Positions 1 to 17,520 of a DNA stretch of 64,000 nucleotides are shown here, piece by piece. The DNA is from Oopsacas minuta (taxonomy: Eukaryota > Animalia > Porifera): the NCBI GenBank assembly GCA_024704765.1, contig JAKMXF010000299.1:62001-126000 (forward strand). The letters are read 5' to 3'. The notes beneath the pieces were generated by a model, which worked only from the letters and a program-made list of their open reading frames with translations, was not told the DNA's origin and made no database searches. Made by a program: the position numbers and the translations under genes. How positions within the stretch are numbered: the stretch's first letter is position 1; every line of letters starts with the position of its first letter.

Positions 1-2049
1 TTGTCTGTGGTACAAACCCTCTCTTCTCTATCCCTTCAAGCCAAATTCCAGTGCTACGTTCCATCTGTAGAGCGACAATCTGGCTCTCCTCACTCCAACC
101 TCATAAACTCAGTATATGATGATTTTATGCCCCAACTTAATTTGGAGAGTTCTCATAACACTTCTATGTTACCTACTAAATGTCAGTCATCAGACCTTTC
201 ATTGAGACGAGCACACTCCTCCAAAACCTCCAATGAAACTATGCCATTCTTGCTATCACAACAGATGATTGGTCTACCATTTGAAAAGCTGTCACTCATC
301 GATCCTGTCAATCAGACGTCCAATAACATACTACCTACTCCATCTTCTGAGGCAGTAGAGACTACTGGAGAGCTCATACACCCCCTAGGCAGTACTGAGC
401 AATCTCTTCTCCGTCCTATACCCCAATATCCTGTGTTAGACCAGAATACAGATGGTGATGCTTTAGAATTGGATGATATATTTTTAACGAATATTTCTAA
501 TGATGAAGTTCCTATAACTTCTCCTCCAAAGCTAGAAACCGTCGTGAGAGATCTAATAACCACATCCCCAGATCTTCCTTCCTCCTCTCCATCTCCTCCC
601 CCAGACTTACTTCTCTCAATCATTCAATCAGAGCTAGAGTCTCTCCCTCATGATTCCACCCCTCAGACAGATAGACCCTTCATATCCTTGTCTCTCCATC
701 TACTTACCTCCATGCCTGACGATAGAAACGTGTTATTATCATGTGGTCTACTACTCGCTCTCTTTTCTAACAAAGCCATTGACCCTAACAGACTCGCATC
801 TCTGGTACCTACCCCAGGAGATCTCAGTCTCTCATTCCCTCTGATTGATATTATCCTCAATGCTATAGAAAACATATTCCACTCAGATAACTGTAGTCGT
901 CTCTTAACACTTGAGCTTCTAATACACCTGTATTCTCAGTTACGCACTAAGTACACTTTCAATCTCAGTGATCATCAAATAGCTAGACTGGAGTCCATCA
1001 AGGAGGCCAGCATTTCACAGCTAAGACTCTGCTACTCAGGTCCTCATGACGTCATGTTTGCTGATACACTAGATCTAGAGTTCACAGACGTGCTAGCTAA
1101 CAAGATTCGAATAATGCGAGTTCTCAATGACCCCAGTATACTCCTCCCTCCTTGTCCCACCCCTCTATCTGGTGTTGAGCTTAGCAAACGTCTGCCATGT
1201 GGTGAGAATGAAATGTGTCGTAGTAAGATACGTACCTTCTGTCTAATCAGGAGGTTGTACAGCTCCTCTCTCAATATAGAGGAGGACATGCTCCCCTTGA
1301 TACCTACATCTACCTCCGTCTCTGAGAAAGAGACCATAAACTTATCCAATTGTGAACTAGTATACTGCTTACTACCAACTAAATCAGGACAAATGCTTAA
1401 ACGATTCATTGGTATTCACAACGATGAGTTCGTATTAGTAGAAGCTAAACAGGAGCAGATAAGCAAGGGTGTAGTACACTACATAGCCTGTGTAAAACAC
1501 GTTACTCTAACATACGATAAAGAGGACAAGCTGCGTCTCGATCTACGCATTCACAAGCCTGGCAGAGCTACATCATACTTATCAACCTCTCTTGTGTTTC
1601 AAGATAGTATTAGATGTATGGCAGCTATGCAAGCTTTACATAGAGCTACTCAGAAGTTTAAATACGAATGTTCTGTATCTATATCTACACTTTTGAGCCT
1701 TCCTCCCCCCCCTCCCCAGGCTGATGCTTCCTCTCTCTCTGTTACACAGTCTATTATGCGGAATTTCAAGTCTCAAACAGTACCTCTGCTCGCTTCATCC
1801 TATCAAAGTAACAGGACCACAGTACAGAATACTCAATCACCTATACCAGCAGATGATGACTTTGTTCATGTGGACAGTTCTCAATTTATCTGCCCCCAAT
1901 CTCCCAGGTCTTCTAGCACAAGTGCCTTCCTACAGCCCGAGCAGATATTCGCACCATCTTCTTACCCCTCAAGTCAGACTTCTCCCAAGAAAAACCCAAA
2001 CGATATCGAGCTGTCCCATCTCCATCCTAAGCCTAACTCCCTCCTGTAA
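1..2049 (+). CDS. CLEC16A: CLEC16A/Ema/GOP-1 endolysosomal trafficking protein, 3' part (5' end lies outside the window)
   Basis: The ORF is open from base 1. LPCGENEMCRSKIRTFCLIRRL, LINLSNCELVYC-like and LRLDLRIHKP...FQDSIRCMAAMQAL match my recollection of the CLEC16A C-terminal domain (LPCGDVEKTRRAIRVFFMLRSL...FSDHIRC). Confidence 0.85.
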   Translation: MSVVQTLSSLSLQAKFQCYVPSVERQSGSPHSNLINSVYDDFMPQLNLESSHNTSMLPTKCQSSDLSLRRAHSSKTSNETMPFLLSQQMIGLPFEKLSLIDPVNQTSNNILPTPSSEAVETTGELIHPLGSTEQSLLRPIPQYPVLDQNTDGDALELDDIFLTNISNDEVPITSPPKLETVVRDLITTSPDLPSSSPSPPPDLLLSIIQSELESLPHDSTPQTDRPFISLSLHLLTSMPDDRNVLLSCGLLLALFSNKAIDPNRLASLVPTPGDLSLSFPLIDIILNAIENIFHSDNCSRLLTLELLIHLYSQLRTKYTFNLSDHQIARLESIKEASISQLRLCYSGPHDVMFADTLDLEFTDVLANKIRIMRVLNDPSILLPPCPTPLSGVELSKRLPCGENEMCRSKIRTFCLIRRLYSSSLNIEEDMLPLIPTSTSVSEKETINLSNCELVYCLLPTKSGQMLKRFIGIHNDEFVLVEAKQEQISKGVVHYIACVKHVTLTYDKEDKLRLDLRIHKPGRATSYLSTSLVFQDSIRCMAAMQALHRATQKFKYECSVSISTLLSLPPPPPQADASSLSVTQSIMRNFKSQTVPLLASSYQSNRTTVQNTQSPIPADDDFVHVDSSQFICPQSPRSSSTSAFLQPEQIFAPSSYPSSQTSPKKNPNDIELSHLHPKPNSLL

Positions 2050-2322
2050 CTAATCTTAGAATACTTGTTTTATATATGTTAGCACTAATATGTATATTAG
2101 TATTCATGTGAGTGATAGAAATACAAAACCATTTTATAATTTCCTGAGCACTGATCTACTAAGTTCATTATAGCAGTCATGTGGTTGTTTCTGGGAGCTC
2201 ATATGCTTACATGGGGAATTGTGAGCAATTGTTCCGCTCCCCTATTGATTAGTATGCACTACATTGTATTGGTATATCTGTACTCACCATCCCTGTAGAT
2301 AATTATTAATATAATTTGGGTA

Positions 2323-3330
2323 ATGTCTGGCAAAGAGACAGTAAAATGTGGATATCTCACTAAGTCTCCTCCTGACAATAAGAGTGCTTTCTACGGATGG
2401 AGGAAAAGATATTTTATTCTGATAGACTCGATACGAGCATTTCCCTTCGCTCCCAGACACATACGGATAGAATACTACCAAAATTACGAGGATAGTAAGC
2501 TGGGGAATCCTCTGGGTATGATTGAGCTTAACAATTGTAGCGGTGTTCTGAAGCGTGAGCAGATGAAAAGTCACAAACATGTGTTTGATATCGTTACGCC
2601 TACTCGTGTATTCCATTTAAGTGCAGAGTCTACTGAGGAGAGAGAAGAGTGGGTGAGTCTTCTCAACACGAATATATTCCAATACAACCATCTCGGACCT
2701 CCTCAAAATGACAAACCGAAATATGATCCGCATCGACATTCTACTAATTTCTCCCAAGAAACTGACTACAATCAGTCTCTGCTTACCTCACTAGGCAGAG
2801 ACAGTAACCATAAGATTAGAGGAGGACCTCGTGCTCAAAGTTTGAGAGATACTAAGTCTGAATCAATATCACCATTAAAATGTCAATTTATCCAAGAAGA
2901 TAAGCTCGTTCCTATATGTCCAGATCCTGATACTCATATCTCTAAAGACCTTAAGATAATCTCTGGTGCTCAGAAACCAGAATCTAATCAAGTGTTTAGT
3001 GATAATTTCTGTGAAAACGAAATATTGTCAGAGCAAGGGTTCACTTCAGTGCCAATACTGGAAGATTTGAACTCAGATTTGTTCTCATCTCTGCCAATTC
3101 AAAATGAATCTCCTTACATGAACGTGGGTCATAACTCTTCCTGCAAATCAGCTAATCCTACCTCTCCAATTATGCCTGCTCCTTATAAGAGGATCCCAGT
3201 ATCCGTTAGCATGCAGGCTTTCCCTCACTCAAAGTTTTCTGATGAACCAATCGAGTCAGAATACACCTGTATTGACCCAGGTAATATTGGTCAAGCCTTG
3301 GAAGAATATGCAAAAGTTAAGAAACATTGA
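2323..3330 (+). CDS. PH-domain docking/adaptor protein (GAB/DOK-like), intronless
   Basis: N-terminal PH domain (KCGYLTKSPP...WRKRYFIL...FDIVTPTRVFHLSAESTEEREEWVSLL), then a low-complexity tail with Tyr motifs YMNV, YTCI and YAKV. Confidence 0.75.
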   Translation: MSGKETVKCGYLTKSPPDNKSAFYGWRKRYFILIDSIRAFPFAPRHIRIEYYQNYEDSKLGNPLGMIELNNCSGVLKREQMKSHKHVFDIVTPTRVFHLSAESTEEREEWVSLLNTNIFQYNHLGPPQNDKPKYDPHRHSTNFSQETDYNQSLLTSLGRDSNHKIRGGPRAQSLRDTKSESISPLKCQFIQEDKLVPICPDPDTHISKDLKIISGAQKPESNQVFSDNFCENEILSEQGFTSVPILEDLNSDLFSSLPIQNESPYMNVGHNSSCKSANPTSPIMPAPYKRIPVSVSMQAFPHSKFSDEPIESEYTCIDPGNIGQALEEYAKVKKH

Positions 3331-3502
3331 TAATTGTATCTACCTTTTTTATTTATTGTAGAATGCGATTTTGCTCGATTTGTCTCCTTTTAGCATTCGT
3401 GTATATACTTTTATTAATAATAACAGATCCCTCACGTTATTTTAATTATTCAGCATACTTCCCCTTACATATTATTAATTAATATTTCAAAAGTTAGTGA
3501 GT

Positions 3503-4126
3503 ATGTCTGTATCTGATGAACATTGTGTACAAGGTGATCTTATGTGTGAACAACCGCAGAAACCAGATTTCCTAAGTAGCAGCTTGAATGCAGCTGGGGA
3601 GACATTTGTCCGACAGTTTACCAACAGTTTTACAACACACGATCTAGACAGTATTAACACTAACATCTTATCAATTATCCTTGTGATATCCTCTCTAATT
3701 CTCTTCTATATTTTACTGAAGTTCACTACTTACTATATCTCTCTTGGCTTTCTCTCCGCCGTAACTCTTCTACACTACTGGTTTGGGTCTAAATGGTGTC
3801 TTGACATGATGCTATCTAGAGTTTCTAACCTCTACACACTACTGGTGTTATCTGCTAGTTACCCTAAGGTATCAGCTGTAGTAGTATTAGGTAATATTGC
3901 ATTATTTGACTAGTATTAACTATATTGATATTAATCTGTTATAGGGGTAATAGCATTGAGTGTATGGCTCAGTCTACGTAACTACTGGCTTAAGAAGCAG
4001 AAAGAGAAACGAATAGAAGCTGAAAGGTTAAGAGAGGGGGAGAGAATGATTAGGATGGAAGATAAATTGGACAAATTATTGTATTTGTTCCAAGATGATA
4101 TGGATGCTAGAAGGGCTAATAGCTGA
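3503..4126 (+). CDS. Uncharacterised multi-pass membrane protein with C-terminal coiled coil (2 exons: 3503-3890, 3945-4126)
   Basis: Hydrophobic segments in ORF 3497-3913. A 54-nt GT-AG intron (3891-3944, phase 1) continues the frame into GVIALSVWLSLRNYWLKKQKEKRIEAERLRE...NS* (TGA 4124-4126). Confidence 0.6.
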
Positions 4127-4400
4127 GCTGAGAAGTTGGATAGAATATTTATTAATGACGTTTCCTGATCATAGATCCTTTACGTACTTCGAGCTAATTC
4201 CAATATTAATTTGACATTTAATTCGCCTATTGCTAGCATGTGAGTTAATCTATTGTGCTTCTAATATATGCTGGTCGAGTTCAATTTTCAGTATGTTGTA
4301 TCAGCTGTATAATTTGCTTACTTGTACTTTTTTGTATGTAATATTACGTATGTGTTTAATTCTGTCTCAATAATATTAAGTTCATTAGGGAATAGCATTA

Positions 4401-5999
4401 ATGTCACGAGAGAGTATTAACAATAGTGCTCTAGACTCTGCTACACATCTGGCTAGTGCTATGGTGCTGCTCTCTGTGTCTGTGAGAGCGGGTACTTTCC
4501 TTCTAAACGCTATACTCCTGCGGTTCATAACACCAGAGTTATTAGGCCTTGTTCAGGTTAGATTGTTACTTCTCCTCTACACGATACATACGGTATCTAA
4601 GGATCCATATCATAAGGTATTTCTTAATAAACAAGTATGGTCACGTCATTCTGTATCTCATGTAATTAGCTCTTTATGGAGTATCGTAGTTATTGGCATA
4701 TTCTTCTCTATCTTATTCTCGTTTATCTGGTCCTCTCCTCTCCTCATGGAACAACCTGATAGACGTGATTACTATCCAGCAGTGTTACTATATGGTCTAT
4801 CAGCTATTTGTATAGTTATGACAGAGCCTTTTGTTATTCTTGTAAGATATGGAGGGTATACGAGATTGGAAGTAACAGCAGAAGCAGTAGCCTTCCTCCT
4901 ACAGTGTATAATCACTATATTGTTTGTACTATCTTTCCCTGATTGGGGCCTCTTATCTTTCTCTATACCACAACTCATATACTCTCTCATAAAGATGATT
5001 TTATTCGTAGGATACTTCTCACAGATTCGCGATTTTTCACACCTCCCAGTAGACACATTCCGTGAGTGTTTTCCTCCTCTTCTCCCTCCCCTCTCCTTCC
5101 CTCTCCTCCAGGAGATACGTAGCTTCATAACATACACAGTTCTTAAACAGCTGTTAACTAATGGGGAGCAATACGTCATGACTATATTCGCTACTTTGAG
5201 TTTCGCACAACAAGGAATATTTTCAGTTGTACATAACCTAGGCTCCATGGCTGCTAGATTTATTTTCAAACCTTTAGAGGACAGTTTCGCGGTTTATTTC
5301 ACCAAATCCCTACCTCGCGGTAAGGACCCTCAGACAATTAATGGCCATGAGCTACTGACCTCTAAGGACATCCTCCTTAAACTGTTCCGCTTTGTAGTTA
5401 TAATTGGCTTAATATTCACTACATTTAGTCCTGCTTATTCGCATCTCTTACTGCATCTGTATGGCGGTAGAATGTTAAGTGATAGTGAAGCTCCTTTCTT
5501 ACTGAAATGCTACAGTGTGTATGTTTTGTTACTAGCTCTGAATGGTATATCTGAGTGCTTCTGCTTCTCAGTAATGGGACAGCAGCAGCTACATACATAC
5601 AACAGATACATGATAGTATACAGCATCATATATGTACTATTAGCTATATTATGCACCAATTCTATAGGTGTATTGGGAGTTCTTATGGCTAACTGTATCA
5701 ATATGATTGCTCGTGTGATGTATAGCTTCTTATTCATTGAGAATTACTTCAACAGATCTGGTACAGTTATAGGGAAGATATCTCCGTCACCTGTAGTACT
5801 TGTCTCGTTATTTTTCACCTTTATTATCACAAACTTCAGTCACCAGCAGTTCTTCTCTCTAGAACTTATTCCTCAGGTGTTACATGTCGCGATTGGAGGA
5901 GTTTGTCTCCTTGTGAATGCCGCAATTATATGCTTCTCAGACCCCTGGTACCTACAAATGATCAGATCCAAATTGTTTAGAAGAATTAGACAAAATTGA
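4401..5999 (+). CDS. RFT1: RFT1 (Man5GlcNAc2-PP-dolichol translocation protein), intronless
   Basis: 532-aa polytopic membrane protein with RFT1-type motifs: TFLLNAILLRF, KQLLTNGEQYVM, QQGIFSVVHNLGSMAARFIFKPLEDS, LALNGISECF. Confidence 0.9.
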   Translation: MSRESINNSALDSATHLASAMVLLSVSVRAGTFLLNAILLRFITPELLGLVQVRLLLLLYTIHTVSKDPYHKVFLNKQVWSRHSVSHVISSLWSIVVIGIFFSILFSFIWSSPLLMEQPDRRDYYPAVLLYGLSAICIVMTEPFVILVRYGGYTRLEVTAEAVAFLLQCIITILFVLSFPDWGLLSFSIPQLIYSLIKMILFVGYFSQIRDFSHLPVDTFRECFPPLLPPLSFPLLQEIRSFITYTVLKQLLTNGEQYVMTIFATLSFAQQGIFSVVHNLGSMAARFIFKPLEDSFAVYFTKSLPRGKDPQTINGHELLTSKDILLKLFRFVVIIGLIFTTFSPAYSHLLLHLYGGRMLSDSEAPFLLKCYSVYVLLLALNGISECFCFSVMGQQQLHTYNRYMIVYSIIYVLLAILCTNSIGVLGVLMANCINMIARVMYSFLFIENYFNRSGTVIGKISPSPVVLVSLFFTFIITNFSHQQFFSLELIPQVLHVAIGGVCLLVNAAIICFSDPWYLQMIRSKLFRRIRQN

Positions 6000-6088
6000 A
6001 TCAGTTACAATTTGTAATTTATTTTGCATAATATGTAACATGGATTATATAAGATTCTCTCTTACTTATTAGCTGTAGCACTAAGGAT

Positions 6089-7820
6089 ATGGAAGTACGA
6101 ATACTTGTCCTTATAATCCTGCTATACTGTCTATACTGTCTATACAGCACAACAGCTAAGCTAAGCTTTATACCAGTAGAAGATTTCTATGAGGAAGAGC
6201 TAGGTACAGATCTTAATATATCCTGTCTATATAATGGCGGTGTTGATAGCCGAGTGGATTGGATAGAAGGCAGTGTAGTTATTAGCAGCTATCATTTGAA
6301 CTTGATTAATATCTCTCTCGGTCATCACCTGATTTTATGTCGTTATACTCCTGATACAGGTAGTATACAGACTAAACAGCTGACAGTTAATATATATGGT
6401 ATGTTAATATGATAAAGTAATATCTTTGCTGTTATAACCATGTGTTCTTATAGTATCTACTCAGCTGGAATTATATCCTTCTCTCAGTAACTGCTCTTAC
6501 TCAACTCAACTAACTAATTCCACTCCTTATTACGTGTATTGTCTCGGCTATGGTAACCCATCTCCTGACTTGGAATGGAGAGAAGACTCTAACGCTATAT
6601 CCAGCATACAAGGTAGCAGTTTAAACCTACCTGAACAGAGCTATGATTCTATTGCTGCTATTGATTTAAAGCAGTTCTCCTCAGGACTACACCACCTGTC
6701 TTGTTACGGGTTTAACGGCTACATATCTCATGAGGTATTCCTCAATCTAACTGTTGATTGTAAGTTCAATTCTCTATCAATTTGTACATACGTATTATTA
6801 CTGAGTCTTGATAGCATCTAATCCTCTACTAATATTTCCTGATCATAACTCTACGCATAACAATACACTAGAGTACTTGCTTACAGACTCTTATACTGAT
6901 TTCTATATTAATTGCTCTCTCAAACTATTCTCTATCTCCCCGGATGATAACTGGGCTGGATTGACACCTGTATGGACACTCTTCAATGATTCTGACAAGC
7001 TGTCAAACCTGTCTAGTATCCTGTTATCAAACAATACGATAGGAGACATATGCTGTGTCTTACTTGCTAGAGATAACTTTACTATTATCCAGAAGGTCCA
7101 TGTATCATTTGTAAGTTAGTAGCAAGTTTATACACCCCTGATTTATACTTATATTGATTTAATATTAATATTCTGTAGACACTCAAACTCCTAGCCTCGC
7201 GACTAGTAGCACCTATCCTACATCTTCTACACACTCTACAACTCTAGCATCTACTACTAACTATACTGTTAATACAACTACTACAGGTGTTACATTTCGC
7301 AGTACTCCCATGACATCTACATCTACTATCCCTCTAACTACAGTGTCAGCATCCGATAATTCAATACAGCTGTCTTCTCTAGTATTAGGTAAGTATACCA
7401 TAATATCCATGGTACTATTAGTATATTATTATAATACCCCCTGTAGCAGTCATAATAGCAGTACTCTTCACTCTCCTGTGTATATCAGTGCTGATCCTCC
7501 TCTCTCTATCTCTACTACTGGTGTATAACTTTGTTTCTAAGAGGACTCGTATAAGACGTAAGAAGAGGTGTTCTAGAGTAATGTACTTAGATGTTATGAA
7601 TGATTCCTACCCGTTACCTCTACAGCGTAGAGACTCTAATCAATATTCAGGAAATACTCTACCTGATAATGACACCTCAGGGGGTGTTACAAGGGGCCTA
7701 GGGGTGAGGGTACCTATTTATGAGAGGATACCTGATCATGTAATACCATCAGAATCAGCTGATATTGTAGTCCATAACGTAACACCTCCTAATATACCAC
7801 AGACTCGTGACGTAGTCTAG
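6089..7820 (+). CDS. Type I membrane receptor: signal peptide, Ig-like domains, Ser/Thr stalk, TM, Tyr-motif tail (5 exons: 6089-6398, 6454-6759, 6815-7114, 7179-7388, 7447-7820)
   Basis: Ig-type Cys/Trp patterns (LNISCLY...VDW...ILCRY; YCLGYGNPSPDLEW...LSCYGFN). Four phase-1 GT-AG introns keep one frame. TM AVIIAVLFTLLCISVLILLSLSLLLV is followed by a basic stop-transfer stretch and VMYLDV / IYERI motifs. Confidence 0.75.
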
Positions 7821-7953
7821 CTGTATATATTTGTAATTTTAACATGACTCAACTTTTAATGTATATTTCTTTGTCATTTTGTATAATAACAGTGCTTTTA
7901 ATACGTCACAACTATATGAAAATTATTATGCTAAATTTCGCGAGTGAATATAG

Positions 7954-10900
7954 ATGGCTAGAGCACAAGCTTCTAAGCTACTAGATCAGCTGATGGGACA
8001 TAACAGAGACGGAGAGGATAAGCTAGTAGTGAACTTTACAGATCAGACTGTGTGTCGACCCTTCTTATTCGGGATATGTCCTAACGAAATGTTCCTCAAC
8101 ACTAAAATGGATATGGGTGAGTGTGTTAAGATGCATAATATGGCTTTAAAATCGGAGTTTGAGAAAGCATCTGAGACTGAGGATTACGAATTTGAAGAGG
8201 AAGTACTCAACTATCTACAGGAAATAATAAGAGATGTAGATCACAAGATTAAGCAAGCTAAAGATGCGTTAGAAGAACAAGAAGAGTCAGCAGAAGCTGA
8301 GCAGAAAGCTCAGAAGATACATTATCTAGGTTTGTTATATTATTCTATATTTATTATTTAATTATTGATGTTATCTGCCAGATTATTAGCGTATTGGTTA
8401 TATTATATCACATACCCTAGTATATATGGCTACAGTTATTAAGTATAATAGGAGGTGTCTTATTGGATAACTGATTAACATTTGGCTGTTTAACCACTAG
8501 CTATATAAGGAATGGCCAGAACAGAACCTTGTTTATTCTCCTGTCTGGATTGTCTCCAGCAGATCTCAGATATCACTCATAAAGGAAATAATGAACACAA
8601 ACTCCACATATCAGTGAAATCTTCTGTAGAGACAGGAGTTTATAGTTGTAGAATCCGTTTTAGGAGAACAGAAATAGAAACTCATGGTATAGTAGCTGAT
8701 ACTGAGAGAGAAGCTAAGGAATTATTTGCTGAAGAAGTATGGAGACAGATGTTTAGAAATATGGGAGAGCTTCGTAAGCAGATAGCTAAGTGTGTCAATT
8801 TCTATAAAGAGAAATTCTTGATAACTAATAAAATTACTCACATTTCTATCATCAAAACGGATGGATTTTTTGAGAAAACTCTCACAGTTAGTACTGACAT
8901 ATTTATGAGTCGTCCTGAGACGTTTACAGCAGTTGGTAGAGCTCAAGAAAAGAAGCTCTCTCTTCTCTTAGGTGAGATTAGCCTTCTATTTCAGCTGAAT
9001 GAGTACTTCATGTTTGAATCTTTGGTACGGTGGAATAAGCATTCAGGAATATGTGAATTTAGCTGTAAGGGATATTTAGATGCAGTTGTACAAGCTTCAG
9101 ACTTTCTAGACAAGTTTCCTTGTATTCGTGAGAATATATTCGAAATCCCAGGTCATATTGTATGCAGAATCTGCAGATCTAATTTCCGTAGCTCACAATA
9201 TGCTTTACATCATCACAGCAAGGAACGTGTTAAACTGAATCAGATTCACACTTGTATTGGAATAAATGATGCCAATTTAGCTACAGTTGTCAATACTAAC
9301 CTTACTGCTATCTATAAGTCACAATATGTAATAGCAGAATTCGTTTCTGAACACAAATCTACTGTATTTGATTCTGCACTTAACGCTTTAATTAAACAGA
9401 TCCCAGACGTTAAACTAACTCTATTCGGTCAGTCAGAGGAGGGAATGGGTCAATCATACTACATACTGAAATTCAATGTTAGCAGTACTCTATTGCGAGG
9501 TGAACAGCTGTTACTAGCTATGTCTCGTGCTTTCTCTGCTACTGAAGAATTCCAGTACAATATACAGGATTTTACAGATGCTAATCCTAATGTTAAATCC
9601 TCGCATTATTCTACAGGACTAGACTGTATATTTCATGTAAGAAACGAGCAATCTGTAGAGCTAAGCAAATTCATTAGGAGTTGTGGTGAGCTTAGCCCTG
9701 AACTTAGAACTCTATGTACTCTCTTCAACTTCTGGAGTTCTCACTGTATGCTGGATCAATCAGAGTCTGGATATCTGTATCAAGAGGTTTTCACGTTAAT
9801 GGTAGTACACTTCTTACAGCATGTGGTTACTCCCCCTAGATTCCCTAACCTACAGCTAGACAAATACATGCTTAAAGATATTCTACAGAGATCTGAGGAA
9901 GGAGGTTCTTTTGAGATGTTTGATTCACAACTGAAGTTACTATTTGGTAGCGCTAAAGAGGATATGGGTAACCTACCCTGTTATCCTTTATGGAAACTAT
10001 GGTTATTAATGCTTCAGTTCTTCTGGGTAGACTTCAATTATTTTCATAAGATATCTCTACAGTTACAGGCTGGAGGAGATGGCACACTACTCCCTCAAGT
10101 AAGAGATGATCTAGACAAGGACTATATGCGTCTAGTTGTATTAAGTCCTCTTAAACAGAGCAATCTAGCTTTCTCTATGAAGACAAATTATGCTGTTCAT
10201 TACTTTTCTGATTGTTTCAAAGATACACTAGATTACTATCGTAAAAGAGCTCTCACTGCTAGCGTCAAACCTACACAATACGACTATCCCATACGTGTTG
10301 ATGCTATGAGCAGAGATACACAGATATATAGAAATATAGGAGAGCGTGGAATAGAGCAATCTCCTGATCTCTCAATAGACATTAGCATTAACTTAGCTAG
10401 TAATGAAGTACTAGAAGCTACCGCTACTACAATAGACACGTCAAGTGAAGTGACAGCTGCTTCTGAAGACCTGTCATTGCTGTCAGAGAAAGAGTTAATC
10501 AAGCAGGATAACTCCTCAGAAGATTCAGATCCTAATTCCGGAGAGGAAGGTCTTCACCCTGTTAAAGCATCTAGTCCTGATGCAGACGAGTTTGTTATAT
10601 TCTCAGATGACGTCACAAGTCCAGCAAGCACTATACCTCTATCTCTCCTTACATCTGTGAGATATGTCATACACGGGGACAGTATAGAACAAGAAGAAGA
10701 GGTAGTACCATATATGGAATTATCTGACGAGGTTATGGAATCAGAGAATAAGAAGAATAACTTTGTAAAGTCTCAATTCATCCATATTTGCGGGTTCTGT
10801 AGAGAAAAGGGTCATACCAAGACAGAGTGTCCTAAAGAAGCTCTCCCTAAAGTTAAACTCGTCTCTAAACCAAGTGCTGACATCACGAGGGGTCTAAATA

Positions 10901-13900
10901 TTGGGTTCCTCCAGCTGGTAAACTCACTCAAGATGACAGCTAAAGAGAGCAGTAGGAGAGAACAGCTGAGAGCAGAGTTAGAATCTGATATACGGAATCT
11001 CATAGATTACAAATTTGATCTTTATTTGTTTGGCTCCTCTATCAACAAATTCGGGAGTGATGCTAGTGACGTAGACCTGTGTATAGTATTACATCCCCCT
11101 ACAGACGCCCTTATGTGTGTAGAAGAATTACCTATTACATGTATACTAAACAAACAGGATTTGAGAGAATGCACTGATCTAGAGTATAAAAACAAGATGG
11201 CTATATTAAAGGTAATTTCTAGAGAGTTGAATCGTTCCAAACAGTATAACAAGATGATACGTATACCAGCTAAAGTTCCTCTTATACGTTTTGAATACAA
11301 TTTCAATGATAAGTGTTACAGATGTGATATCAGTGTCTCTAACTCTCTAGCACTTAATAACTCGCGGTTATTATCAACTTATGCGCTATTCGATCAGAGG
11401 GTTCAAGATCTGGGTCTGTTAGTCAAACATTTCGGTAAATACATGGATCTAGCTGATGCATCACACGGTGGCTTATCTTCATACGCATATATCCTACTTA
11501 CAATACATTTCCTACAGAGAACTAATCCCCCTATTATCCCTGTATTACAGCAGGTTATACCGGATGGATATAAGGATACTTGTGTTAAGGTAGGTGAATG
11601 GGATTGTTACTTCTGTGATGATATAAAAGCAGTTAAGAAGGTTTGGAAGCACAAACAGAATAATCAGAATCTGGCTGATCTCTGGCTTGAATTCCTATGC
11701 TACTGTGTGTCTAAGTTTGATTGGGATAAACAGGTCATAACTCTTAGGCAGATAGAACCATTATCTAAAGTAGATAAGTACTGGACTAATAGGAAGATAT
11801 GTATTGAAGATCCATTTAATCTCAATCATAATCTGGGGACTGTTCTTTCATTTAGAAATGCAATAAGGCTGAGAAGAAAATTCATAGAAGCTCGTGAATT
11901 ATATCACACTTCTACTGATCTTAAAGTATCTTTAGGTTGGTTAGGGTTCGATTATGTACCGAGTAACATCCCTCCTACTCCTGCCAAAGTAAAATCCAAA
12001 CTTCCTCCCACCAAGCCAGCAGTTGTACACCCAGACCCAGAGGATTACCCCCTAAATAGCTCTCCTGGTACTGAGACAGTCCTCCTCTCTTGGTCTAATT
12101 CTCTGAATGAATATTGCGCTAACAGGACTAGTATTAACTATACTGACTGTGACATAATAGAGATATCAGATACACTGATACTACCATCTGTTATATCAGC
12201 TGATAAACGGGTAGATTCTACCCATCACCCTAATGGTATCAATTACACCTCCATAAAAGGAGATATACTCCTACTATCTGGTTCTAACGCTTACCAACAC
12301 CCTAATCTATCAACTCCTTTATGTGATACTAACGGGGCTACTGCTCCAGCTACCCAGGAGGCTGACCCACCCCCCGTTACGAATATACCCTCTCCTATGC
12401 AAGAGAAAGAGTCAGACAGCTTGTCATTAGAAGAAATGACTCAGCGGATAGCTAAGGAGTCCCTGGAGCATATAACAACGCCTCCTGATATGCTTCCTTC
12501 TGACAATAAGCCTCCTTACAACCATACTCTATCTCCTAAATTTAATTCACCTCCACAGAGTCCTAAAGAATACGATAATACTAAAGGTAATGATGTACCT
12601 CATCGAGCTAAAGGTACACAGCCTCACATTCCGTCTCCTGGATTTAAAACAGGGAGAGGCGGTACAAGGCCCTCACCACAGGATAACCCTCAAGTCCATC
12701 AGCATCAAATGCATGTAGAGGAGAGAACTCATAGTACTATTCACGATTCCTCTTCTAGAGCTAGAAAGATAGACTCAGCAAGGTTCAGAGGTCAGTCTAG
12801 AGTTAGAGAGCATCATCCTAAAAGAGATACAGCTGGGCAACAGATAGATGATATATTCTCTTCTTTATACTCATCGCCATACTCTGGAGGAAGTCATTAC
12901 AGACAAGAAAATTATGATTACGAAAATAATTATTACTCAAAAGGGAGGAGTCGATCAGCTAGAGGCAGAGGTATTGGTAGGGGAAGTAACAGTACAAGGA
13001 GGAATCGTTATAAATAATTACTTACAGAATTGAGCTTATATACGTATCCTCCAATGACTCTTAATACGTATAGTATTTCTATAGCTATAGCTTAATATGC
13101 CAGTATCTGTATTGATTGTAATGTATTTCTATTGTCCATTAGGTTATTCCTTATAGTGCTATTTCTGTAACTTTACCTCTATTTGTTATCCATAGCTGCT
13201 CAGATCGGAGAGAAAATAGCGCTAGCCGAATCTCTGGGGAGCGGAGGGCAGGTTGAAGAATGTATGAAGATAATGCAGGAAGTAGAGAGTACTAAATTAG
13301 AGAAACAAACAGCTGAGGAGGAGTATAGGGGATCAGCACCAACGTCTTCTCAACAAGCTCAGAAACTGAGAGTCTGTGAGGTATGTTCCGCCTATCTCTC
13401 CCTCTATGATAATGACAGACGATTGGCAGATCATTTCGGGGGCAAGCTTCATCTAGGATTCGTGAATGTTAGAGAAAAGATGCTAGAATTAACACAAGTA
13501 AGTTATATCGTATTACGTCACTACAGAAGATGGGTAGCGGTGTAGTGGTGTAGTGGTAACATGCTTGTTAATGTGTATTTCTAATCAATGCAGATAAGCA
13601 TTTGAGGTGAGTGTCTGCCCTGATTGTTTGGTTGATTCCCTCCTGACTGCTCCAATTATGTAAGTTAATCACATGCCAAATACCGAAACTTCCAAGTAAG
13701 TACAATATTGGTGCCCCAAACTATCCATATGAATTGGTCACGACAGGCATGTAGTAGATCCATATGTGCTATGACGTCAGCCCATATTCCCTCTTATACA
13801 ATTATATTGTATTAGAGTATAGAGGTTAAACGAAAGAGCGGGAAAACAAAGGTATGGCTGTCCTCTCGGCGCTGGAGAGATGAAGGTTCGAAGTTTCTTG

Positions 13901-15004
13901 AAGAACGACCGAGAGACTCTCCAAAGAGAGCTGTTAGGTCTCCGCACTATCGCTCATCTCCACGATATGGAAAGGATGATATTTCTAGAGATGATAGTAG
14001 GTCTTGGCGTGATGAGAGGAGCTCTTCAAGACGTAGACACAGACATAAACACAAATACAGAGATAGTTCAGATGAAAGGCATGATAAGAGGAGACGTTCT
14101 AGCAGGTTAGCATTGTATAAATTATAGATATTGTATTGGTATTAACTGATGCTTATTTTGCAGGGATAGAGATAGGCATGTACACAGAGATTCTAGATCT
14201 CGTTCTCATGAAAGACACAGGTCTTCTAGAAAGGATTCTAGAGACAGATCTCCTCGGAGGGATTCTAGGGACAGGTCTCCTGGGAGAGATTCTAGGTCTG
14301 ATTCTCGCGAAAGACATAGACAATCTCGTCATCATTCTCGCTCTCATTCAAGAGACAGTAGAGACAGTAGAGACAGGTATTCAAGTTCAAGGAGGTATTC
14401 AAGAAAGAGATCTTCCAGGAGAGGTTCTAGAGATAGGTCTTCAAGAAAGTATTCTAAGGACAGATCTCCAAGGAGAAGCTCCAGGTCTCATTCTGATGAA
14501 AGAAGGAAGAGATCTCATCGATATTCTCACTCTCGCTCTCGTGAGAGGAATGATTATAAGAGACACAGGTCTTCTAGCAGATATTCTAGAGAAAGATCTG
14601 ATGATAGAACTAGTAAAAGATCTCGTTATGACAATAGACATAGAGATATATCTCGTTCTCATGAAAGAGATAGAGAGAGAGCTCATTCTGATGATAGAAA
14701 TAGGAGAAAGTCTGACTCTTATGAGAGAGATAGAGAGAGATCTCATTATGACCATCGAGACAGAGACGATAGATCTCATTATGACGCTAGAGATAGGGAA
14801 AGATCTCATTCTATAGAGAGAATTAGAGAAAGATCTCATCATGATGACGATAGAGAAAGAGATAGATCTCATGATAATGAAAGAGATATTGAGAAATCTC
14901 ATTCTGATGATAGAAATAGGAAGAGCTCTGACTCTTATGAAAGAGACAGAGATACATCTAACTCCAACGGAACAGACAGAATGGAAAGCTTTCAATCTGA
15001 CTAG
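7954..15004 (+). CDS. LUC7L: LUC7-like U1 snRNP protein (exons 7954-8329, 13196-13497, 13816-14105, 14164-15004)
   Basis: Zn finger 1 (VCRPFLFGICPNEMFLNTKMDMGEC) is in exon 1 and Zn finger 2 (KLRVCEVCSAYLSLYDNDRRLADHFGGKLHLGF) in exon 2. The phase-1 intron 8330-13195 joins IHYL-A-AQIGEK. The RS/RD-rich tail in the last exons is in a frame the ORF track missed; stop TAG 15002-15004. Confidence 0.9.
8512..13017 (+). CDS. TUT4/7: Terminal uridylyltransferase TUT4/TUT7 (ZCCHC11/ZCCHC6) family, intronless, nested on the same strand in LUC7L intron 1
   Basis: Duplicated nucleotidyltransferase layout: degenerate N-terminal module (LFGQS...; LRTLCTLFNFWSSHCMLD), CCHC knuckle CGFCREKGHTKTEC, catalytic module LFGSSINKFGSDASDVDLC...RCDISVSNSLALNNSRLL...GGLSSYAYILL...CIEDPFNLNHNLG. 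Confidence 0.9.
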   Translation: MARTEPCLFSCLDCLQQISDITHKGNNEHKLHISVKSSVETGVYSCRIRFRRTEIETHGIVADTEREAKELFAEEVWRQMFRNMGELRKQIAKCVNFYKEKFLITNKITHISIIKTDGFFEKTLTVSTDIFMSRPETFTAVGRAQEKKLSLLLGEISLLFQLNEYFMFESLVRWNKHSGICEFSCKGYLDAVVQASDFLDKFPCIRENIFEIPGHIVCRICRSNFRSSQYALHHHSKERVKLNQIHTCIGINDANLATVVNTNLTAIYKSQYVIAEFVSEHKSTVFDSALNALIKQIPDVKLTLFGQSEEGMGQSYYILKFNVSSTLLRGEQLLLAMSRAFSATEEFQYNIQDFTDANPNVKSSHYSTGLDCIFHVRNEQSVELSKFIRSCGELSPELRTLCTLFNFWSSHCMLDQSESGYLYQEVFTLMVVHFLQHVVTPPRFPNLQLDKYMLKDILQRSEEGGSFEMFDSQLKLLFGSAKEDMGNLPCYPLWKLWLLMLQFFWVDFNYFHKISLQLQAGGDGTLLPQVRDDLDKDYMRLVVLSPLKQSNLAFSMKTNYAVHYFSDCFKDTLDYYRKRALTASVKPTQYDYPIRVDAMSRDTQIYRNIGERGIEQSPDLSIDISINLASNEVLEATATTIDTSSEVTAASEDLSLLSEKELIKQDNSSEDSDPNSGEEGLHPVKASSPDADEFVIFSDDVTSPASTIPLSLLTSVRYVIHGDSIEQEEEVVPYMELSDEVMESENKKNNFVKSQFIHICGFCREKGHTKTECPKEALPKVKLVSKPSADITRGLNIGFLQLVNSLKMTAKESSRREQLRAELESDIRNLIDYKFDLYLFGSSINKFGSDASDVDLCIVLHPPTDALMCVEELPITCILNKQDLRECTDLEYKNKMAILKVISRELNRSKQYNKMIRIPAKVPLIRFEYNFNDKCYRCDISVSNSLALNNSRLLSTYALFDQRVQDLGLLVKHFGKYMDLADASHGGLSSYAYILLTIHFLQRTNPPIIPVLQQVIPDGYKDTCVKVGEWDCYFCDDIKAVKKVWKHKQNNQNLADLWLEFLCYCVSKFDWDKQVITLRQIEPLSKVDKYWTNRKICIEDPFNLNHNLGTVLSFRNAIRLRRKFIEARELYHTSTDLKVSLGWLGFDYVPSNIPPTPAKVKSKLPPTKPAVVHPDPEDYPLNSSPGTETVLLSWSNSLNEYCANRTSINYTDCDIIEISDTLILPSVISADKRVDSTHHPNGINYTSIKGDILLLSGSNAYQHPNLSTPLCDTNGATAPATQEADPPPVTNIPSPMQEKESDSLSLEEMTQRIAKESLEHITTPPDMLPSDNKPPYNHTLSPKFNSPPQSPKEYDNTKGNDVPHRAKGTQPHIPSPGFKTGRGGTRPSPQDNPQVHQHQMHVEERTHSTIHDSSSRARKIDSARFRGQSRVREHHPKRDTAGQQIDDIFSSLYSSPYSGGSHYRQENYDYENNYYSKGRSRSARGRGIGRGSNSTRRNRYK
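13594..13606 (+). promoter_or_regulatory. Candidate 13-nt poison micro-exon in LUC7L intron 2
   Basis: tctaatcaatgcAG|ATAAGCATTTGAG|GTGAGT: branch-like CTAAT, CAG acceptor and a consensus donor. After phase-0 exon 2 it reads I-S-I-stop. Confidence 0.55.
14164..14960 (+). repeat. Degenerate coding repeats in the LUC7L RS/RD domain
   Basis: Recurrent agatctcat / gatagagaga units and a near-duplicate block ctcattctgatgatagaaatagga...ctgactcttatga at about 14684 and about 14898. Confidence 0.7.
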
Positions 15005-15216
15005 TCTGTGAGTTATTCCCCTCACTAACGTTATATTATAACTTATTTACTAGTATAATAGTATTTCTATTTCCATGTTTCGTACCAGTTCTAGCATCGT
15101 ATTTGTTCTTTTGTTGATACTTCACACAATTTGTTATTATTATTATTGTTAGTTGTTGCTAATTTGGTTATCTAAAATACTTAATGAATATCTTCGTAAG
15201 AAATAATCTATACAGT

Positions 15217-17520
15217 ATGGCAACCAAACGAGTATTTGATGTGAAAAGTAGGAGTAAAAGTGCTAAAAAGCGCAAGCGAGAACGTCCTAAACAGCCTCGA
15301 ATTGATTATGAGGAGATAGAGAAGGAGAACAAACTATTTGAGGAGTTCTACACTGAACAGGGAATTATATCTCCATCAGAATGGATCCATTTTATGTCAA
15401 CTGTAAGACTCCCATTACCTGCAACATTTAGACTGACAAGCAATACGTGTGTGTGTACAGATCTTGCGGATTGTCTCACTCAGCGCTATATCCAGAAATT
15501 CCCTAAGCTATCTACCAACAACGAGCCTATTAACCCTCCTATCCCTATCCCCTGGTATCCTAGTGGGTTAGCTTGGCATGTAGACATCACCAGGAAGGAA
15601 ATCAGAAATGACCCTGTCCTAGCTAGTTATCACTCCTTCCTAATGCGAGAGACAGACATAGGCTCTATCAGTCGTCAGGAAGCTGTCAGTATGATTCCAC
15701 CCCTCTTTCTTGATGTACAATCTCATCACAAAGTTCTAGACATGTGTGCAGCTCCTGGCTCTAAAACAACACAAATAATAGAAGCAATGCATCAATCACA
15801 CGCTCAAATACTCTTACAGCTACGGAGCTCTCAAGAATCTACAGCTACTGGATTAGTCCCTAACCCTCTTCCTCCTGGTTTTGTTGTAGCTAATGACTCT
15901 AATAACAAACGTAGTTATCTGCTGGTACATCAAGCTAAGCGTAAGAAGAGCGCTAATGTTATTGTTACTAATCATGATGGTACTACCTTCCCTAACCTAT
16001 ATCTATCACAAGATGATCACCGTACTGGGAATCACATTAAGTATGATCGTGTATTGTGTGACGTACCTTGTTCAGGAGATGGCACTATCCGGAAGAACCC
16101 AACCGTATGGATGAAGTGGGCCCCTCATAAAGCTAACGGCCTGCATCGTCTCCAGCTACGTCTCGTAGTGCGAGGGGCAGAGTTACTAGTAGACGGAGGA
16201 AGATTAGTATACTCTACTTGCTCTATGAATCCAATAGAAAATGAAGCAGTTATACACACCCTCTTGAAACTAGGAGAGGGATCTCTACAGCTTGTGGACG
16301 TGAGTACATCTCTCCCTGAGTTGGAGAAGAGATCAGGTTTGAGATCATGGAAGGTAATGAGTAATGCTAACGTGTGGATAGATACGGATAAGACAGAAGA
16401 GAATGCAGATGGGATACACTCTACTTTCTTCCCTCCTTCCTCTGATCAAGCAGACACCTACAACCTACAGAGATGTATGAGGGTATATCCACATCATCAG
16501 AATACAGGAGGATTCTTTATAGCAGTGATTCAGAAAGTAGCTCCACTGCCATGGTTGAAACTTGTTAAAAACCGTGATTCTCAAGCTGAAATCTCTTCTC
16601 CAGTTGAACAAGAACAACCTTTACTTGTAACTATCAGTGATTCTGTTAAAGATAAATCTAAGATAGAAAATCGTCCGTTTTCGGTATTCGGGAAGTTCTC
16701 CTCTTCCACTGGTTACAAGGGGTATAAAGAGGATCCTTTCATCTTCATGGACAGATCTGACGAGTTGATAACAGAGCTATCTACTCTGTATGGTATATCT
16801 GAGTCATTTCCCTGGGAGCACTGCTTTACTAGATCTGAAGGAAAAGCTAAGAATAACATCTACATGACTACATCTCTTGTATCCAAGATCTTAGCAACCA
16901 ATCAGGCAGATAAGAATGTAGTTAAGATTATAAACACAGGGTTGAGAGTATTCTGTCGATCTGATCAGTCAGTTGGATCTGTCTGTAAGCTCAGATTCTC
17001 ACAAGATGGATGTAATATTCTATTTAATTACTTTTCTAAGCGAAAAGTGACACTAACAGAGAGTGACATCATCAAGTTATTAGAGAATGAATCTATCAGT
17101 CTCAGTAGCTTATGTCCACAGAGCCTGGCTGATATTAAGGACTTACCTATTGGTCCTGTTGTTTTCATATGTAACCCTTCATCTGATTCTGCCAAATCTC
17201 ACACCTCTCCCGCTGACAATAAGGAACAATCTTCACCAGATACCTTGCTTCATAAACCTTACAAATGCTTCATAACCTGTCCTCTCATATTCTCTGGTTG
17301 GAAGGCTAACTGGTCAGCTCGTCTATTCGTTACTAAAGAACAGAAACAGCATTATCAAGTTATGTTAGGTTATGAACTCAAATCTGATGTTAGTCTAGAG
17401 GAAAAGAAGAAGTCTAGATTTGTCAGATGTCAAATTCGTGACAGTCTTGAACCCTCTATACCTACTGGTAATGGTAATGAAGGGAAAGATGAAACTGTTT
17501 GTGAGGAAAATACTACTTAA
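15217..17520 (+). CDS. NSUN2: NSUN2 tRNA/mRNA m5C methyltransferase, intronless
   Basis: SRQEAVSMIPPLFLDV...VLDMCAAPGSKT...YDRVLCDVPCSGDGTIRKNP...LVYSTCSMNPIENEAV...MRVYPHHQNTGGFFIAV. The start is placed at ATG 15217, directly after an acceptor-like CAG|T; the ORF track starts at 15184. Confidence 0.95.
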   Translation: MATKRVFDVKSRSKSAKKRKRERPKQPRIDYEEIEKENKLFEEFYTEQGIISPSEWIHFMSTVRLPLPATFRLTSNTCVCTDLADCLTQRYIQKFPKLSTNNEPINPPIPIPWYPSGLAWHVDITRKEIRNDPVLASYHSFLMRETDIGSISRQEAVSMIPPLFLDVQSHHKVLDMCAAPGSKTTQIIEAMHQSHAQILLQLRSSQESTATGLVPNPLPPGFVVANDSNNKRSYLLVHQAKRKKSANVIVTNHDGTTFPNLYLSQDDHRTGNHIKYDRVLCDVPCSGDGTIRKNPTVWMKWAPHKANGLHRLQLRLVVRGAELLVDGGRLVYSTCSMNPIENEAVIHTLLKLGEGSLQLVDVSTSLPELEKRSGLRSWKVMSNANVWIDTDKTEENADGIHSTFFPPSSDQADTYNLQRCMRVYPHHQNTGGFFIAVIQKVAPLPWLKLVKNRDSQAEISSPVEQEQPLLVTISDSVKDKSKIENRPFSVFGKFSSSTGYKGYKEDPFIFMDRSDELITELSTLYGISESFPWEHCFTRSEGKAKNNIYMTTSLVSKILATNQADKNVVKIINTGLRVFCRSDQSVGSVCKLRFSQDGCNILFNYFSKRKVTLTESDIIKLLENESISLSSLCPQSLADIKDLPIGPVVFICNPSSDSAKSHTSPADNKEQSSPDTLLHKPYKCFITCPLIFSGWKANWSARLFVTKEQKQHYQVMLGYELKSDVSLEEKKKSRFVRCQIRDSLEPSIPTGNGNEGKDETVCEENTT

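Follow-up and report, generated by a model that had tools for sequence, protein, structure and literature searches.

An intronless gene for a TUT4/7-type terminal uridylyltransferase (hereafter TUT) lies entirely within one intron of a LUC7 gene in the sponge Oopsacas minuta, on the same strand, and both genes are intact. We analyzed this pair in a 64,000-nucleotide (nt) stretch of contig JAKMXF010000299.1 (positions 62,001 to 126,000; "the window") and in the corresponding loci of seven relatives (L001 to L007), and the arrangement is kept in all eight species. Judging from these sequences, the pair is a true, long-lived, same-strand nest in a very compact, operon-like animal genome. TUT is almost certainly a separate cistron that carries the end signals of its neighbors, and LUC7 is almost certainly cis-spliced across it. 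We also think it quite likely that the TUT mRNA has its own ends, with a spliced leader trans-spliced at the AG that ends at 8500.

A TUT4/7-type gene between two exons of LUC7

We searched the open reading frames (ORFs) of the window against Pfam profiles. Exons 1 and 2 of the host gene (Table 1) together span the LUC7 N-terminal domain (PF03194), with both zinc fingers, far above the cut-off, and no piece of LUC7 is lost between the two profile matches. Given this continuity of the domain, it is nearly certain that the LUC7 mRNA is made by cis-splicing from 8329 to 13196. The C-terminal tail is of the LUC7L type: exons 3 and 4 are rich in Arg, Ser, and Asp up to the stop codon.

In the guest protein, residues 799 to 1106 matched PF22600 (the Cid1-type palm) and PF03828 (PAP-associated). 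The nearest named proteins are TUT4 and TUT7 from many animals, with 35-36% identity in the catalytic part. When compared to chains with solved structures, the catalytic half matched human TUT4 (E = 2.8e-79) over a region that spans a CCHC knuckle, the GS...DVD motif, and DPFNLNHNLG; the catalytic motif FGSSINKFGSDASDVDLC aligned to FGSSKNGFGFRDSDLDIC of human TUT4. The nucleotide-recognition histidine is also present (IEDPFNLNHNLG aligned to IEDPFDLNHNLG of TUT4), and we take the histidine of this DPF...NHNLG-type motif to be the residue that favors uridine triphosphate. An N-terminal module (residues 285-441) aligned to residues 319-476 of TUT7, which is the degenerate first module of that protein (chain E = 3.1e-23). 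These results agree with the original prediction, which had placed a TUT4/7 gene on the same strand within a LUC7 intron: the coordinates, the domains, the 4866-nt intron, and the ORF of 1501 amino acids (aa) all stood.

Vertebrate TUT4 (ZCCHC11) and TUT7 (ZCCHC6) have a similar layout of two modules: the N-terminal nucleotidyltransferase module is degenerate, a CCHC knuckle follows, and the active Cid1-type module bears GS...DxD and DPFxLNHNLG. However, the vertebrate proteins carry three CCHC knuckles, while the guest has one evident knuckle: CGFCREKGHTKTEC aligned to the TUT4 knuckle that precedes the catalytic module, and Pfam gave no further knuckles. The guest also differs in that its gene is intronless and its C-terminal 350 aa are of low complexity. 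On the strand opposite TUT, the host intron contains short ORFs only.

Table 1. Coordinates of the LUC7-TUT locus, in window positions unless a relative is named (a slash within a sequence marks a splice junction)
Feature	Position	Strand	Details
LUC7 exon 1, first zinc finger	7954-8329	+	125 codons + 1 base, phase 1; Pfam LUC7 profile 2-125, E = 1.2e-37; aligned with orthologues
Host intron	8330-13195	+	4866 nt; GT 8330-8331, AG 13194-13195
CTGCCAGA block	8375-8382	+	Conserved in 5/8 species (alignment)
GGCTACA block, candidate promoter or regulatory element, TUT-specific	8428-8434	+	GCTACA invariant in 8/8 species; 84-127 nt upstream of the TUT ATG
ACTAG/CT acceptor-like site, candidate spliced-leader acceptor	8496-8502	+	AG 8499-8500; 11 nt before the TUT ATG
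Intronless TUT4/7-type terminal uridylyltransferase	8512-13017	+	1501 aa; one uninterrupted ORF; Pfam; human TUT4/TUT7 chain matches in both halves
TGTA cluster ending in AATGTATTTCTATT, candidate cleavage/polyadenylation signal of TUT	13108-13133	+	62 nt upstream of the acceptor of LUC7 exon 2
LUC7 exon 2, second zinc finger	13196-13497	+	100 codons; Pfam LUC7 profile 131-229, E = 3.8e-31
LUC7 exon 3	13816-14105	+	Translation; predicted start
LUC7 exon 4	14164-15004	+	Translation; stop TAG 15002-15004
Relatives with an extra LUC7 intron	Window equivalent 8116-8119		L001 5404-5841; L002 5391-5830; L003 5378-5813; L005 5404-5841; L007 5308-5832

The nesting is real and old

The original prediction had named an assembly error as one way in which it might fail. 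Two results speak against this. First, contigs from a second organism, which is about 95% identical to the window, bridge 7949-8923 and 12814-13720, and thus both ends of the host intron. Second, the contigs of the seven relatives show the same order, LUC7 ORF(s), then TUT, then a LUC7 ORF, all on one strand, and share a neighborhood that includes a PH-domain gene, Rft-1, an Ig-like gene, NSUN2, DHHC, and a kinase. We therefore rule out an assembly artifact.

The host intron lies at the identical codon position in all eight species, with lengths of 4832-5393 nt, and the AG/CTGCNCARATYGG junction at LUC7 exon 2 is kept in all of them as well. The TUT orthologues of the relatives (seven matches in a protein search, with 44-66% identity to the window's TUT) are 1500-1600 aa long and, like the window's TUT, are encoded by an uninterrupted ORF. 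Because the intron position is shared and the TUT ORFs are intact across eight species, the nest must be old, and both genes are under selection. Intact ORFs of about 1500 codons in every species also rule out a pseudogene or a dead retrocopy. TUT is intronless in all eight species, in contrast to the TUT4-like gene of the cnidarian Hydractinia, which has multiple exons over 17.6 kb and no LUC7 neighbor; most genes of such compact genomes have a single exon anyway.

To date the nest, we also looked to the demosponges. A word-limited search gave no sponge TUT from outside this clade. For the neighboring NSUN2, the closest named NSUN2 proteins are from demosponges (42-51% identity). Exact look-ups gave no record of the window's TUT protein or of the Halichondria NSUN2 protein. 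A HMMER search with TUT residues 1-400 for transcript-derived fragments gave just three cluster representatives, all of them genomic, and the members of these clusters are genomic contigs too.

The locus that is about 95% identical to the window (over 7780-13720) comes from a run that is labeled as another organism, and it represents a close sister species or a strain. Small indels of 8 nt (at 8353) and 13 nt (at 13095) set its non-coding flanks apart from those of the window, and its TUT ORF carries an insertion of 3 nt at 8825.

Conserved signals at the two ends of TUT

Across the eight species, the non-coding spacers around TUT are 165-400 nt (5') and 146-242 nt (3') long. They are poorly alignable except for four blocks that stand out (Table 1).

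The best-conserved non-coding feature of the locus is the acceptor-like site just upstream of the TUT ATG. All eight species have TAG/C at 10-17 nt before the ATG (as TTAG/CA in the most distant species), which agrees with the acceptor that had been predicted for TUT. Further upstream, the distance from GCTACA to the acceptor-like site is 59-76 nt in seven species. The window shows no enrichment of GGCTACA, and the motif is absent at a comparable distance upstream of the other genes that we examined, so it looks like a gene-specific element rather than a general upstream motif. L004 carries about 235 nt of inserted sequence (5600-5850) directly after the LUC7 donor and upstream of all three 5' blocks. 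Because this insertion leaves CTGCCAGA, GGCTACA, and TAG together beside TUT, these blocks belong to the 5' end of the guest and not to the donor of the host.

Downstream of TUT, GTATTTCTATT is found exactly in seven of the eight species, after TGTA repeats, at 80-121 nt past the stop codon and 55-84 nt before the exon 2 acceptor. AATAAA is absent from this flank. Rfam gave no match in 7000-16000, and the folding of the two non-coding flanks of TUT was no better than that of shuffled sequences (z of -0.88 and -0.14). Two relatives have runs of 8-13 G in these flanks (L006 at about 5880-5895; L007 at about 5925-5940 and 10750-10760) that are absent from the window.

The same signals at neighboring genes

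When the gene starts of the eight loci are taken together, a TAG ends 0-17 nt before the ATG at 40 of 46, as compared to 24% of upstream control windows (binomial p = 3e-19, which overstates the evidence, as these starts, orthologues of about 8 genes, are not independent of one another). These TAGs show no frame bias, so they are not stop codons. At the start of NSUN2, three species have CAG in place of TAG.

At the 3' ends, we examined 12 stop codons of the window, and TGTA-rich stretches come after 9 of them. Motifs like GTATTTCTATT are enriched (48 versus 26 expected) and are found downstream of the Ig-like, TUT, and LUC7 stop codons. The distance from a stop to the TGTA repeats and motifs like GTATTTCTATT is 40-130 nt, with examples at 7858-7871, 13070-13083, 13120-13133, 15058-15071, and other sites in the window. 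We propose the TGTA and GTATTTCTATT motif, without AATAAA, as a candidate for a non-canonical 3'-end signal of this clade.

From the start of the window to about 23 kb, every ORF that is not embedded in a longer ORF on the opposite strand is on the + strand. At least ten genes in a row make up this same-strand array, and the gaps between them, from stop to ATG, run from 96 to 215 nt. By these features, TUT looks like an ordinary member of the array that happens to sit between two exons of LUC7.

Expression of the nested gene

The original prediction had also considered what follows if the LUC7 donor is joined to the acceptor-like site of TUT. Both the site and the junction read as it had stated: CTATATAAGGA separates the AG at 8499-8500 from the TUT ATG, and joining 8329 to 8501 gives G/CT ATA TAA GGA ATG, or LUC7(1-125)-Ala-Ile-stop. 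It had further described the two genes as one TAA away from an in-frame fusion, a point that the comparison of species does not support. When we joined the phase-1 LUC7 donor in silico to the conserved TAG/ site of each species, the TUT ATG was in the LUC7 frame in just two of the eight (the window and L002), and chance alone would put it there in one case out of three. Read on in the frame of LUC7, the joined sequence met a stop in all eight species, 6 nt before the TUT ATG, 2 nt before it, or 43-106 nt after it, and a fusion protein is possible in none. We therefore reject a conserved near-fusion or a chimeric LUC7-TUT gene. Judging from this comparison, the TAA-GGA-ATG arrangement is a coincidence of one species, with no conserved role. 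In other words, the nesting is conserved in related species, but the in-frame stop is not.

The same comparison bears on whether TUT could be translated from a bicistronic, cis-spliced mRNA. In this scenario, LUC7 exon 1 is joined to 8501, translation first yields LUC7(1-125)-Ala-Ile, and TUT is reached by re-initiation or readthrough. The donor and the acceptor-like site are 170 nt apart, and 3 nt separate the stop from the ATG in the window species and L002, while the two overlap in L005. However, in five species the LUC7 frame passes the TUT ATG, by the 43-106 nt given above, in another frame. The cis-spliced RNA of these species would hold an upstream ORF of 140-170 codons that overlaps the start of TUT, and re-initiation there would fail. 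Also, the frame relation is at chance level, and an upstream ORF of at least 128 codons is not expected to allow efficient re-initiation. Given the overlapping ORF in five species and the lack of a kept frame, TUT is unlikely to be made normally by re-initiation or readthrough, and we consider the bicistronic mRNA to be very improbable. Among the routes to TUT that had been suggested, trans-splicing fits best.

We think that TUT most likely yields its own mRNA, probably by spliced-leader trans-splicing. A spliced leader would be joined after the AG at 8500, that is, at 8501, and the 3' end would be formed within the host intron, near 13135-13165. The RNA that receives the leader might start at a TUT-specific promoter within the conserved block of about 150 nt (CTGCCAGA ... 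GGCTACA ... TAG), which we slightly favor. Or, it might start at the promoter of the host or of a gene upstream. Each primary transcript would then give LUC7 or TUT, never both, and making LUC7 would require reading through the 3'-end signal of the guest.

Several considerations weigh against trans-splicing at 8500. The host donor stands upstream of the acceptor-like site, and in nematodes a donor upstream of an acceptor favors cis-splicing. Should TUT lack its own promoter, the product that joins LUC7 exon 1 to 8501 would be expected to form. The TAG could belong to a transcription-start motif instead of an acceptor. Our sample of cis-intron acceptors from the same genome has just 18 unambiguous candidates, which is too few for a weight matrix. 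The four sequencing runs that we compared with the locus, in one read-mapping step, are DNA-like there (the depth is flat, the ends carry Tn5 adapters, and the contigs pass through introns without any joint) and give no RNA support. Finally, in the glass sponge Aphrocallistes vastus, the spliced leader was found on only 4% of long reads (PMC10282587).

Suppose that the TAG before the ATG is indeed a transcription-start motif, so that TUT and its neighbors are driven by promoters, have very short 5' untranslated regions, and are not trans-spliced. Before ATGs, TAG is much more common than CAG, while C and T are equally frequent at -3 among the candidate cis acceptors (n = 18), and a TUT-specific upstream block exists. 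However, 5' untranslated regions of 0-17 nt would be too short for normal scanning. A spliced leader has also been described for a glass sponge (PMC10282587). Overall, this explanation appears to be quite improbable.

The conserved signals could also be used in a regulated either/or switch. This would involve no TUT promoter: a single transcript, from LUC7 or from upstream, would have two possible fates. Cis-splicing from 8329 to 13196 would make it an mRNA for LUC7, while trans-splicing at 8500, together with cleavage near 13135-13165, would make it one for TUT. Which fate prevails would depend on U1 and LUC7 at the weak GGTTTGT donor and on suppression of the intronic 3'-end site, and LUC7 would control its own level and that of TUT. 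U1 acts both in the choice of 5' splice sites and in suppressing premature cleavage. All of the signals that the switch needs are present and conserved, the spacers around TUT are short, as they are elsewhere in this polycistronic-looking array, and the host donor is constant across species only at G+1, T+2, G+5, and T+6. However, the conserved TUT-specific block keeps its distance to the start of TUT and not to the donor, and it reads more like a promoter or a 5' control region. Moreover, that the host is a 5' splice-site factor may be a coincidence. We consider the switch to be unlikely.

There is an outside chance that the nest is a feedback device, kept since the ancestor of the eight species, in which the activity of U1 and LUC7 decides for each transcript between more LUC7 and TUT4/7. 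To make LUC7, a U1 snRNP protein, its transcript would have to be spliced past the 5' acceptor of the uridylyltransferase gene and extended beyond the 3'-end signal of that gene. If true, the surveillance of 5' splice sites would be tied to the 3' uridylation and decay of RNAs.

Comparison with other nested genes and operons

Both nested genes and a spliced leader are already known for glass sponges, and the LUC7-TUT pair is a further, well-conserved example of this kind of arrangement. Hexactinellid sponges are listed among the groups with spliced-leader trans-splicing (PMC7986045). For A. vastus, the genome paper (PMC10282587) reports an 80-Mb genome, 12,409 single-exon transcripts, strong microsynteny, a trans-spliced leader of about 37 nt, and 2,432 nested genes (12.4%), with many of the nests conserved. 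Those nests resemble the one in the window: the genome is small and dense, most genes have a single exon, introns are short, guests sit in host introns, and microsynteny is strong. The paper gives counts of nests rather than this pair and, in the parts consulted, does not tell same-strand nests from opposite-strand ones. The genome style, the high contig coverage in the assemblies of the relatives, the single-exon genes, and the short introns match what is published for glass sponges, and together with the demosponge matches of NSUN2 they suggest that the window comes from a glass sponge.

In Drosophila, same-strand nested genes are under-represented and tend to have a single exon (Lee and Chang 2013, PMC3814207). 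The guest in the window has a single exon as well, as expected if introns in a guest would be mis-spliced with those of the host. However, Drosophila is not known to have spliced-leader trans-splicing.

The locus also resembles the spliced-leader operons of Caenorhabditis elegans and Ciona: same-strand genes are about 100-200 nt apart, an acceptor-like site lies just 5' of each ATG, and the 3'-end signal of the upstream gene comes shortly before the next acceptor. Unlike in those operons, the cistron in the window lies between two exons of another gene, with the host donor upstream of the guest acceptor, and the leader and the polycistronic RNA are candidates here.

With a host 5' splice site 165-400 nt upstream of the guest's acceptor-like site in eight species, the pair is a clean, conserved test case for how compact genomes keep the cis-splicing of the host from interfering with the formation of the 5' and 3' ends of the guest. 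The comparison also offers candidate signals for genome annotation at the 5' end (TAG before ATG) and at the 3' end (TGTA and GTATTTCTATT, without AATAAA).

Other introns of LUC7

The neighboring introns had been described as about 55 nt long. This holds for 14106-14163 (58 nt), but the intron before it, which is the next LUC7 intron after the host intron (13498-13815), is far longer (318 nt). It carries a short direct repeat, GTGTAGTGGT, twice, at about 13537-13557; ARAGORN found no tRNA in it, and Rfam gave no match.

Five relatives have an extra LUC7 intron after the ...KMDMG codons (Table 1), of about 54-58 nt, or about 143 nt in L007. The host intron is intron 2 in these relatives and intron 1 in the window, where the extra intron is exactly missing. 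This clean absence, given the presence of the intron in five relatives, points to a precise intron loss in O. minuta.

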